A stretch of DNA of 63,449 bases, filler included, from Olpidium bornovanus S191 (Eukaryota > Fungi > Olpidiomycota): NCBI GenBank assembly GCA_017911155.1. It is 30 parts of 30 records of this genome, joined end to end, with 100 filler letters (N's around TTAATTAATTAA, not from the genome) between each part and the next. Parts side by side here need not be neighbours in the genome. Positions count along the whole stretch, not along the records: positions 39,016 to 40,730 come from JAEFCI010004014.1; 29 more parts are not named here. One strand, written 5' to 3'. The notes under the pieces are model-generated. The model searched no databases, had not been told where the DNA came from, and saw nothing but the letters and a program-made list of their open reading frames with translations. This document shows positions 3,585 to 41,185 of the stretch, piece after piece. Both the position numbers and the translations under genes were made by a program. Each line of letters opens with the position of its first letter. The stretch's first letter is position 1.

Positions 3585-5644
3585 CATGACCGTGCGTGCG
3601 AAGTCTATTATCAGCTGAAGGTTTGAAAAGTTGGATTTCGAAGCCGGCGACGACACCGGAGTGCTGCGGGAAAGGGTTTCTTATTTGCTCACTTCAAGGG
3701 TTGTATGACAGGGCGGTCGCGTTGACTACGGGAGCAAGCACTCTCGTGACGTCGGCCACTCGCGGTTCGGGAGGTCATATGACGGTAGACGCTACGCTGG
3801 ACCGCAAGCTATTAGAGCTTTCGTCTTCGAGATTTTGCTGGCAATTTTTCTTATACTTTTCGTTCTCACAAACCACCGTCAGGCTTGTATCCGGAATGGT
3901 CTTCCAAAAAACCTCTGCACTTTGTTGGTCACTCCTTGGGAGCGACGACGATTTGGTACCTGCAACAGCTGTTGACCCGCGGCTGGTTTCCTGATAATAT
4001 GATGGCCGAGGATGAAGCGCCAAAATTCGTAGTCGAGAAAAACTGTGATTTTCCGGTCACGGAAGTGTCGGTGCCCAACGAGCGGCGAAGCGGTCGCGCC
4101 GGTAAGCTGTCGGGCCGAAGGCGGCGGCGCCACAACTGCGCAGACTGGATGAAATCCGTGACCGGAATTCAAGCGACGTACCGCGGTTCAGGACTGACAA
4201 ACATAATGGGACAAGCGGAGGATAATCCTTTGAAGAGTAAGGCTCCGTTCATAAGGAAGCAGCGAAGCCCACTTGTTTTACCGTGCCGGGCACCTCACTG
4301 CTTCGTTTTCCCCTTCCGCATTAGTATACCCGTTCACTGTCGTCGGGATTGTGTTTTGGTTAATCTACCTCTACGTGTATTTCGACTTGTCGGAACTCAG
4401 GCTGTTTCGTGGTCCCTGGGATTTCAACCTTGACCACTGGAAGCTGTCACGGTCTGCGAAGAACTGCTTCGCTTCACCATACGCCAGCCTGGAAAGTTGC
4501 TTGTCGCCGGCAACGCCTAACACGGCTCCTGAGTCCATAGAGGCGCCGTTGCCCGCGCTCACTCATACGCGGAAAACTGGCCAGTGGTTGGCGCTGCTCG
4601 GATTTAGGCCGTGCCCGTTCGCGCAGTCCAGAGACACGGCTCTGTTCGACATTGCCCTCAGGAGAATGGAGAGGCTAAATAGGCAGGCCGTCATGTGTAA
4701 AAGGACGTTTTACAGAACGTTTACGACGAGCGTGGTGAGGAACGAGAAAGTAAAAAAAAATCTGAAACGGCTGTGCGTGATACTCGACCTTACGGGAAAC
4801 TCGCCGCTCACGCAGATGCATTGACCACTTTTCTCGTGCCATCCAGACGGAGGCCGATCCCGTGACGAAACGCCATCGGCCGTTCCGGGCCAGGGGCGCG
4901 TCACTCATCACCCTCTTCTCGTGGTTGATGGGCCGCTACGAAGTGCCCGAGGCTGTCTACACTGATGGGAACCAGCAGATTATACTGGACGACGATGCGG
5001 ACCAGTGGGTCGAAGAGGGCGACGACTTCGTCGGCAACGAGGACCTCATCGTGGAGATAGCACTGCGCGACTCGCAGATAAACGAAGACGTTGACGCGGC
5101 ATCGCGGCTGGCGACGGGAGCTCCGCAAAGAGGATTGTGGGGTTCCGCCAGGCCCCTGGTGAAATCGGCGTGCGAAAGCCTGCGCCGGTTGGGGCAGCTT
5201 TTGGTGCAGGCCATCCGGGGAGACGACTATACTTGCTTGTCGAAGCGCGAGAACGGTCGTGAGGCCAAGAAGCCTCTTTCGCCGGAAACCGTAAAGGCCC
5301 CGGCAGCACAGCCGCGGCGGCCGCGGCCGCCTCCGTTGATTTTCAGCTCCAAACCTCCGTCGGTGTGCCAAGCGACGACTCGCGTCGTGGACGCGCGCGG
5401 TGGGAGGATGATCGCCGAGGAGACGACGACACTGGCCTTCAGTCCTGATCCGTGGTCACCAGAGTCTTGGTGGGAAAACGACGGGATGACGCCCGTAGTC
5501 AGCCAGCGGCATCCGGGAGCTTGCCACAGAGGTTACTGCCGCGGATGCCCGTTCACGTCCGAGGGTCTCGCCCTTTCACTGGCGACCTCGCACTCCAGGA
5601 TCTTCTTCCCAACGGCTAACATCTGGGAAGCGCCGCAGAACATG
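3585..5644 (+). CDS. Spliced lipase resembling bacterial family I.5/I.6, with C-terminal extension (partial)
   Basis: Exons splice via GT-AG (intron 3621-3711, then a second intron) to HDRACEVYYQLK|GGRVDYGSKHSRDVGHSRFGRSYD|GLYPEWSSKKPLHFVGHSLG. GHSLG nucleophile elbow at 3927-3941. A hydrophobic segment follows downstream. Confidence 0.85.
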
Positions 5645-39015: not shown

Positions 39016-40100
39016 CATGGTCCCTTTTTTGTGCGGTCGGGGGGAGCCGCCGGCGATGTGTTTCTTGGTGTTGTTTACCTGGTGTTTTTTCGGCCACGAA
39101 ATTGTCTGTGAGAAACGGACGGCGAGGTCTTGCATACCTTTCAGCGTTTTTGGTTGTTTAATAATGCCGTCGATTTTGCCTCTAAACTCGTTGGGAAGTG
39201 CGGCCTTGTACGCCGTCAGCCACCTGTGTTCTTCTGCGTCGGGAATTGTTAGCAGTAAATTCGTGGACGTGTCGTTGAACGCATGAATAGATGAGTAGCG
39301 CGAAAATTCAAAGCGCATAAGTCGAGCATCTGCTCGTTCAACGTGCTGCGTCGGATAGAACCGCTCTTGGAGTGCTGTCCGAAGTTGTATCCACGAACGC
39401 CAGCGGTCTGGGCTTTCCGGTGCGTAAGTCCGGGCGTTGTGTATGTAGAGGTTGCCTGCGGAGCTGGTTAATTTGCCCGCGGCATGAACCATGAGAACGC
39501 GCTCCGAATCGCCGACATCTAGTGCCAGGTCAGGGTAGTCCTGGAACTTTTGGATGAATAATTCGAGCGCTGCTGCGCCGCCCGTCCCGTCGAACTTCGG
39601 TACGTCCTGAAGTAGTGGTTTAACCACTTCGTATTTTTGTTTATCTGTGTTCGAAATGGCGGAGGACGTAGACGCGGAAACGGAAGCGGAACCGGGAGAT
39701 CGCGGGCGGAGGAGTTCACCATCATTGTATGGCGACGGCAGGGAGTCTGCCGGTGTAGCCGGTGGCTGCTGTTGCTGCTGTTGGAGGAACGAGAGAACTT
39801 GGTCGAACTTGGTATGCAGGTCAGCCAGTTCACCCCTGTACGCGTCGCTTTCGGCGGCGCGCTCGGTACGTTCCCTTTCCAACTGTTCCTCACGCATGCG
39901 GAGTGCGCGTTCCCGTGCGTCTAGCATCTCGGAAAATGTTCAGCGCTGGCTTCTTACTTTTGTGTCTTCTCCGGCCTTCGGGACACTGGCGTGGGGGTTA
40001 GGGTTCTGCTGCGCTTCTGTACTTACCTTTCCTCCGGTAATTTCAGCTGTTACCCGTCCGGAGCTTTCCGAGTTTTGTGGCGGCGGGGTTCTGACCATCA
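39016..40100 (-). mobile_element. LTR-retrotransposon gag with in-frame TGA at 39940-39942, 3'-truncated
   Basis: VKPLLQDVPKFDG...AAGKLTSSAGNLY...WIQLRTALQERFYP...WLTAYKAALP. Paralog of the 2352 gag. The upstream ORF MVRTPPPQ... is in the same frame. Confidence 0.85.
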
Positions 40101-40158
40101 TTTTCTTGGCTTTGCGCTGTGGCTGGTTGGTTAGTCTAGACAATGGTCGTCAACGTTT

Positions 40159-40170
40159 GGGCTCATAACC
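40159..40170 (-). promoter_or_regulatory. Primer-binding site complementary to the anticodon arm of initiator tRNA-Met (half-tRNA priming type)
   Basis: Minus strand GGTTATGAGCCC is the reverse complement of GGGCUCAUAACC of fungal tRNAiMet. It lies directly after the LTR end ...TACA and upstream of gag. Confidence 0.88.
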
Positions 40171-40286
40171 TGTAGGTTATGGCTGCGGGGGATGGCAGTA
40201 CGTTTCCCTTTTTATTTTGGTTCTGCGTGTAGTTGCGAGAGGCAGGCGGGGGAGGCTACATACAAGTTCGGAATAGATCTACAACA
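40171..40286 (-). mobile_element. Short 5' LTR (116 bp)
   Basis: On the minus strand it starts TGTTG (40286), ends CTACA (40171) and contains AATAAA. It abuts the PBS. Confidence 0.75.
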
Positions 40287-41185
40287 TCAGGTGACGCAGT
40301 GCGGCAACCGGCTTCGGCGAGTAAGGGCGGTCACGACGAAGGCAAAACCAAAGGTCGCGACACCTGCGACATTGACGGCACACACGGCGCTGCGTTCAGC
40401 GAAGTGAACGGGTGTCTCGCTGTTTCGGTTGATGGCGTCTCCCAATTGACTAGATTGTTGCAATCGTTCTTCAGTGAAGTCGGGTGATGGAATTCAGAAA
40501 AGGGAAAAGTGGGGCTGGGGGAAGGGGAGGGAGGGCGAAGGCGTCCGAAAGGAGGGAACGCACGGCGTGGTGCAGGAATTCCATGTACCAGGTCCGGGGA
40601 TGCCTGCGGCATGATGCCCACGGGATGCGCGCTGCGTGCGTATTATGTTGTAGTCTTTGAAAATCAAGCAGTTTAATGCCACGGGGCCGACACGGGGCGA
40701 CAGGCGCTGAGGCGAAGGCGAAGTACAGAANNNNNNNNNNNNNNNNNNNNNNNNNNNNNNNNNNNNNNNNNNNNTTAATTAATTAANNNNNNNNNNNNNN
40801 NNNNNNNNNNNNNNNNNNNNNNNNNNNNNNGTCTGGTTCAAAAAGGACGACACTTTTTGCGTGAGAACGGTTGGCTGGGCGCTTGCTACGTCACGCAGGA
40901 AACCTTAATAATCCAGCCACGCCATTTGCCAGGTCCCGAAGGCAAACATGGCCGCCACGGCGCCCATCCACTGGCCCCCTACCCCCCCCCCCTCCCCTCC
41001 CCCCCTTTTGGCAAGCTGCCCGCGCCCGTCGCCACCGTTGAACCGGGTTTTCGATCGCCCGCAGGGGAAAAAAATCCGCACTTTAAGAGCAGGCCGCGCG
41101 TCCCGCCAGGTATGCCCTCGCTCCCCCGGGCTGCCTGCTTTTGCCCCTTCCCCCCCCCCCACTTTTCCCCCCTGCCCAAGCCGAC

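Follow-up and report, generated by a model that had tools for sequence, protein, structure and literature searches.

The end of the U5 region in an LTR of the fungus Olpidium bornovanus is complementary to the start of the primer-binding site (PBS) that follows it, and the hairpin that the two can form is real and uncommon in the one copy examined. Judged by its sequence and its closest relatives, the DNA that carries this hairpin is most likely the start of an LTR retrotransposon from a zoosporic fungus, a member of the Ty1/copia superfamily with a Ty3-like gag. We propose that the U5-PBS stem acts in cis and may mask the priming end of the PBS, modulating initiation, and we give this reading a probability of roughly 0.4.

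Little is understood of the way in which copia-type elements obtain their half-tRNA primers and have them placed. If U5 and primer compete for the PBS in a natural element, that element would offer a simple handle on primer placement, and no description of a hairpin of this design was found in the literature searched.

The junction hairpin and its primer-binding site

The window, that is, the whole stretch of DNA that was analysed (63,449 nt, joined from 30 parts of the O. bornovanus S191 assembly), includes a 1715-nt piece of JAEFCI010004014.1 in which the element reads on the minus strand (Table 1). The LTR is putative; its boundaries were set from its TGTTG...ACA ends (of the TG...CA type) and the adjoining PBS alone, in a piece without a 3′ LTR. 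No internal repeat or repeat partner of the LTR was found in the 1715 nt, so the piece neither supports nor contradicts the LTR length.

Table 1. Features of the element and its flank, in window coordinates
Feature	Position	Strand	Remarks
Flanking DNA	40730-40287		Read 5′ to 3′ on the minus strand; upstream of the LTR
Putative 5′ LTR, 116 nt	40171..40286	-	Starts TGTTGTAG, ends CCTACA
AATAAA	40216-40211	-	LTR positions 71-76; direct read
Hairpin 5′ arm in U5, GC + CATAACC	40175..40183	-	RNA folds
Outer GC of the hairpin	40183-40182	-	
CATAACC	40181-40175	-	LTR positions 106-112
Loop TACA	40171..40174	-	Final four LTR bases; inside a short terminal inverted repeat (TGTAG near both ends)
PBS GGTTATGAGCCC, 12 nt	40159..40170	-	Directly 3′ of the LTR; complementary to nt 29-40 of fungal initiator tRNA-Met
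GGTTATG (PBS start, hairpin 3′ arm)	40170-40164	-	
Bulged A in the hairpin	40163	-	
GC of the PBS, outer pairs of the 3′ arm	40162-40161	-	PBS nt 9-10
Leader, PBS to gag ATG, 231 nt	39928..40158	-	
gag ORF, 304 codons	39016..39927	-	ATG at 39927; cut by the piece edge at 39016; Retrotrans_gag-type capsid

The LTR finishes with the 13 nt GC-CATAACC-TACA, and the PBS opens with GGTTATG-A-GC. CATAACC and GGTTATG pair perfectly over 7 bp around the 4-nt TACA loop, and two further outer pairs form across the bulged A. This arrangement of LTR end, immediately adjacent GGTTATGAGCCC, and stem had been described in a sequence-only reading of the window, and direct reading and folding of the copy confirm it. 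As an isolated RNA, the hairpin folds at -10.2 kcal/mol, makes up 85 to 92% of the ensemble, and has a z score of -3.8; it still forms in RNA contexts of 171 nt and 81 nt. The duplex between the U5 arm and the PBS is predicted at -11.9 kcal/mol. When either strand is folded as DNA, the hairpin comes to about -5.7 kcal/mol.

The identity of the PBS is well supported. GGTTATGAGCCC is the reverse complement of the anticodon arm of yeast initiator tRNA-Met over 12 of 12 nt, and the same 12 letters close a published Northern probe for this tRNA. The PBS thus complements tRNA positions 29 to 40 without a mismatch, a segment that comprises the anticodon loop and parts of both stem strands. Anticodon-loop (half-tRNA) priming has been assigned in the literature to Ty5, Drosophila copia, and some plant copia lineages. 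The earlier interpretation of the 12-mer as a mark of half-tRNA priming thus stands, as evidenced by the yeast probe and this literature, and the feature that places an element among those primed by half of tRNA-iMet, a complement of the anticodon arm directly after the 5′ LTR, is present at all 12 nt.

Comparative evidence points the same way. A search of metagenomes with a pol alignment (A1) retrieved 80 copia loci, among which GGTTATGAGCCC or its GGGCCC variant occurs at 21 sites, mostly directly 3′ of a CA-type LTR end. For three such loci (L135, L119, and L103), the LTR ends were matched to their own 3′ copies. Together, the 12-nt tRNA match and the 21 copia sites, three with confirmed LTR ends, make half-tRNA-Met priming a well-supported reading of the PBS.

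Several side observations concern the surroundings of the junction. Immediately 3′ of the 12-nt PBS, the window (40158-40157) and L111 have the dinucleotide AA; among loci L095 to L174, it is GG in L134, L151, L157, and L163 and AG in most GGGCCC-type sites. This dinucleotide probably reflects the anticodon stem of the initiator tRNA in each host; a search of the larger metagenome copia loci revealed no tRNA genes. Within the flank upstream of the LTR, the 8-mer TGTTGTAG recurs inverted at 40645-40652 (plus strand), 86 nt from the end of the piece, with no further similarity around it within the piece. A second, dissimilar LTR cut off by the edge may begin there, or the match may be due to chance. 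The same flank holds a purine-rich tract (A/G with few interruptions) at 40497-40545 on the plus strand, which adjoins no LTR-like start.

Proposed masking of the PBS and its alternatives

How unusual the hairpin is depends on what is counted. It is the sole perfect 7-bp hairpin with a 3- to 6-nt loop in the 1715-nt piece, and 27% of shuffled pieces hold at least one such hairpin, so a hairpin of this kind is unremarkable in itself and the unusual part is its exact position on the start of the PBS. Among 323 control windows of 25 nt, not one can make a Watson-Crick helix of 7 bp with the first PBS bases, shuffling U5 with its last three bases kept gives a p value of 0.010, and a rough analytic estimate of the chance of this placement is about 0.003. 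These placement values are optimistic, inflated by selection, because the hairpin was picked by eye. Covariation is unusable as a test of the stem, since the PBS arm is fixed by the tRNA.

Other half-tRNA-Met elements offer a broader comparison. The last 25 to 30 nt of U5 were scored against the PBS at the 21 metagenome junctions, with same-locus windows and shuffled U5 sequences as controls. Pairing between U5 and the PBS was not enriched in this set (Fisher p of 0.11, Kolmogorov-Smirnov [KS] p of 0.47, 2 of 21 at p ≤0.05), and the junction p values look uniform. A 7-bp Watson-Crick stem is found at 0 of the 21 junctions, and a PBS-pairing U5 arm is absent from 19 to 20 of them. The thought that such complementarity might be general among half-tRNA-primed copia elements is thereby contradicted, and if the arm is conserved in the family of the window copy, it would be a lineage-specific device.

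Two of these loci are instructive at close range. L163, an unrelated copia element with a PF14223 gag, has at positions 109 to 137 the arm GCCATAGCC, a 10-nt loop, and the PBS, which form nine pairs and a bulged A as in the window copy, one of the pairs being G·U (p of 0.002). That G·U pair is tolerated only in plus-sense RNA. Its sister L157 (103-139) has two changes in the arm and has lost the stem. As a separate observation, L135 (224-240) has a 6-bp junction hairpin, CATAAC / AAAG / GTTATG, with a 4-nt loop; there, a 2-nt spacer separates the LTR from the PBS, and the LTR end is confirmed by a 3′ copy at 4215-4445.

In the role that we propose, the 13 nt that end U5 would fold with the 10 nt that begin the PBS into a stable local hairpin in the genomic RNA, with the tRNA half remaining the primer. 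In cis, the U5-PBS stem would keep the first seven PBS bases closed until the primer anneals, and a masking stem of this sort would set the rate or timing at which minus-strand synthesis starts. Occlusion of the PBS by the stem is plausible. The predicted tRNA:PBS duplex (-21.3 kcal/mol) is stronger than the hairpin (-10.2 kcal/mol), so the primer could win, at a cost of about half its binding energy. Also, the PBS matches the tRNA over 12 nt, five of them beyond the stem, and tRNA priming is therefore apparently maintained.

That the stem forms in vivo and regulates priming is what we infer from the points that favour masking, among them a dominant local fold, a rare placement, a tRNA duplex predicted to outcompete the stem, and the same design in L163. 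Integrase recognition is no obvious explanation for the arm, since the arm lies outside the 5-nt terminal inverted repeat. Masking is weakened by the single copy examined, the choice of the hairpin by eye, the lack of a trend across the 21 junctions, and the stemless L157. It is weakened, too, by the consideration that the same hairpin, formed as DNA, would tend to hinder plus-strand transfer.

Nearly as likely as masking is a hairpin without function, in which a 7-nt complement to the PBS arose by chance in the ancestor of the family and has been shared by descent. Anyone who reads through many LTR ends may expect to meet one case at a p of about 0.003 to 0.01, and a functionless hairpin would sit well with the unenriched set of 21 independent junctions, with a pair of sister loci of which one has the stem and the other does not, and with the frequency of 7-bp hairpins in shuffled pieces. 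Nevertheless, chance followed by descent accounts less readily for the exact junction placement, the 4-nt loop, and the two extra outer pairs, or for the independent recurrence of the design in L163.

The U5 arm had also been read as a built-in mimic of the tRNA. The likeness is confined to seven bases, CATAACC being identical to tRNA-iMet positions 34 to 40, and any sequence that pairs with the PBS must resemble the 3′ end of the primer. An extended mimic was rejected: the 12-nt tRNA-sense word is not repeated in U5, even with up to three mismatches allowed. A tRNA-derived LTR of the Helenus type was rejected as well, as ARAGORN found no tRNA and Rfam no relevant match in the piece.

Masking of the PBS within one RNA remains our preferred reading, and two further roles for the same bases appear distinctly less probable. 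Dimer linkage, which we consider unlikely, would have the 18-nt quasi-palindrome pair two genomic RNAs as an extended duplex and aid their co-packaging, in the manner of a retroviral dimer initiation site. The predicted homodimer, at -26.9 kcal/mol versus twice -10.2 kcal/mol for two hairpins, pairs the outer loop bases too and would suit this role. However, the case is one of prediction alone, the comparative data lend it nothing, and the dimer would block both PBSs.

Slightly less likely still is a part in telling the 5′ LTR from the 3′ LTR, in which the stem would mask sequence just downstream of AATAAA and suppress premature polyadenylation. The stem is possible only where the PBS follows U5, which places it at the 5′ end of the RNA; the arm follows AATAAA at a distance of 30 nt; and an LTR as short as this one leaves little room for other means of telling the ends apart. 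Against these points, fungal poly(A) signals are loose, and such a part for the stem is a matter of pure inference.

A new self-priming route had been raised from the sequence and is the least likely of all. In such a route, U5 would be cut after CATAACC and the new 3′ end would prime on the PBS in cis or on a partner RNA. In its favour, Tf1 is known to self-prime and some copia lineages are predicted to; the arm is also the same as the 3′ terminus of the tRNA half, and a reaction in trans, which is geometrically possible, would yield the same cDNA start. Against it, a cut in cis would let only the four loop bases be copied, and the first strand transfer would then lack R. Moreover, the AGCCC part of the PBS fits the tRNA but not U5, and a U5 primer would tend to overwrite it; the LTR holds no other sequence complementary to the PBS.

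Copia gene order in relatives and a Ty3-like gag

Because pol is absent from the piece, gene order was read from relatives of the gag, of which an exhaustive phmmer search found 42. The best relative, the 1600-residue polyprotein P0001, is identical to the window gag at 53% (BLASTP) or 62% (phmmer) of aligned N-terminal positions, and its domains run Retrotrans_gag, protease barrel, gag_pre-integrase, integrase core, SH3, chromodomain, and RVT_2. Five further polyproteins also place integrase before reverse transcriptase (PR, gag_pre-integrs, rve, SH3, RVT_2). The sequence-only reading had left the domain order to be checked as the means of telling copia from gypsy, and integrase before an RVT_2 reverse transcriptase in the closest relatives points to the copia superfamily, not to gypsy.

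The gag itself is of another kind. Its earlier description as a Retrotrans_gag capsid of Ty3-like type is upheld by a match to PF03732 in the window (E of 0.0017, below the cut-off) and by the same profile in 11 of 13 relatives, of which 7 match Ty3_capsid and none PF14223. The copia-type gag (PF14223/PF14244), which is typical of the Ty1/copia superfamily and not strictly defining of it, is absent from the window gag and its relatives. Ordinary half-tRNA-Met copia loci carry a PF14223 gag in seven cases out of seven, which bears out the suspicion that a Retrotrans_gag capsid beside a half-tRNA-Met PBS is an unusual pairing. Among named species, O. bornovanus supplies six proteins related to the gag, one of which shares 70% identity across 60 residues, and the chytrid Borealophlyctis nickersoniae is the other source.

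The start of gag in this copy is less clear. An in-frame TGA lies at 39942-39940 (minus strand), four codons upstream of the gag ATG, and upstream of this TGA the frame is open from an ATG-ATG at 40101-40096 (40101-39943, minus strand). Similarity to the Olpidium protein P0006 extends as far as the TGA. Because of this similarity and the open frame further upstream, the true start of gag is ambiguous, and the copy may be interrupted.

Searches outside the named relatives gave little. A word-based protein search with the gag returned no match in its length range. Gag alignments A2, A3, A5, and A6 had diverged too far to serve as seeds for finding loci, and the narrower alignment A4 found no relative in the metagenomes; likewise, the gag of this lineage is in none of the 80 copia loci retrieved with pol. 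Viral contigs scanned with pol alignment A1 yielded no relatives, and the same contigs scanned with the PBS word yielded only chance matches in phages. The combined pattern of hairpin and PBS, searched in prokaryote and viral collections, has a single chance match in each, that of the prokaryotes being in a Bacillus genome. L129, a locus labelled as human-gut metagenome, encodes a copia polyprotein and was used in the bulk scan only.

A chromodomain is found in three of the six polyproteins (P0001, P0011, and P0021). In each of the three, it lies between the integrase SH3 domain and RVT_2, together with a Retrotrans_gag/Ty3_capsid-type gag. The two surveys of fungal LTR elements consulted do not describe a chromodomain in copia elements; they give it for Gypsy only or leave it unmentioned. 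The family is, then, an unusual mosaic of copia gene order, a Ty3-like capsid profile, and, in relatives, a chromodomain.

A bolder proposal would join this mosaic to the junction. It envisions a zoosporic-fungus lineage of copia order that combines a U5-terminal copy of the primer 3′ end with a Ty3-like capsid, several of its members having a chromodomain after the integrase as well; the U5 copy would serve either as a half-tRNA priming switch or as a trans substitute primer in an RNA dimer. We regard the proposal in this full form as improbable. If true, either function would be a form of priming control undescribed for any LTR element.

Comparison with known systems

Ty5 and Drosophila copia are alike to the window element in having a PBS directly after the 5′ LTR that complements the anticodon stem-loop of initiator tRNA-Met. 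Among such sites, the window has the fungal GAGCCC form of the PBS, whereas most metagenome copia loci have GGGCCC. In the literature searched on half-tRNA priming in Ty5 and copia, a set that left out the Ty5 priming paper itself, pairing between a U5 arm and the PBS is nowhere described.

Self-priming is known in Tf1 and Tf2 and has been predicted in the copia lineage TAR. In these elements, as in the window copy, the element's own RNA pairs with the PBS. However, Tf1 pairs its PBS, which has no complementarity to a tRNA, with the first 11 nt of the transcript, a long loop lying between the two, whereas the window element has the 3′ end of U5, a 4-nt loop, and a perfect tRNA PBS. The only complement of the PBS in its LTR is the 7-nt arm at the U5 3′ end, and the Tf1-type feature is absent; the transcription start of the window element cannot lie 11 nt from the end of the LTR.

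Fungal copia elements of the GalEa group have a Conserved Hairpin Site (CHS) at the LTR/PBS position, which includes the last base of the LTR and whose role is unknown (PMC5445492). This site replaces the PBS and sits downstream of the LTR as a CTGATCAGT-type palindrome with a spacer of 12 to 41 nt (PMC5445492). The window element resembles GalEa, also a fungal copia group, in that a hairpin marks the junction of LTR and PBS; unlike GalEa, it keeps a normal tRNA PBS. A GalEa-type site, that is, a CTGATCAGT/CTAATTAGT palindrome with a second complementary box and no tRNA PBS, was rejected for the window, as the motif is absent even with one mismatch allowed.

In retroviruses, the U5-IR stem, the U5-leader stem, and the HIV-1 primer activation signal are RNA structures near the PBS that modulate tRNA-primed initiation. 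The retroviral structures lie beside the PBS or make contact with the tRNA elsewhere, whereas the stem in the window consumes the priming end of the PBS itself. With this difference in view, the U5-IR and U5-leader stems would be the nearest functional analogy to the masking stem that we propose.
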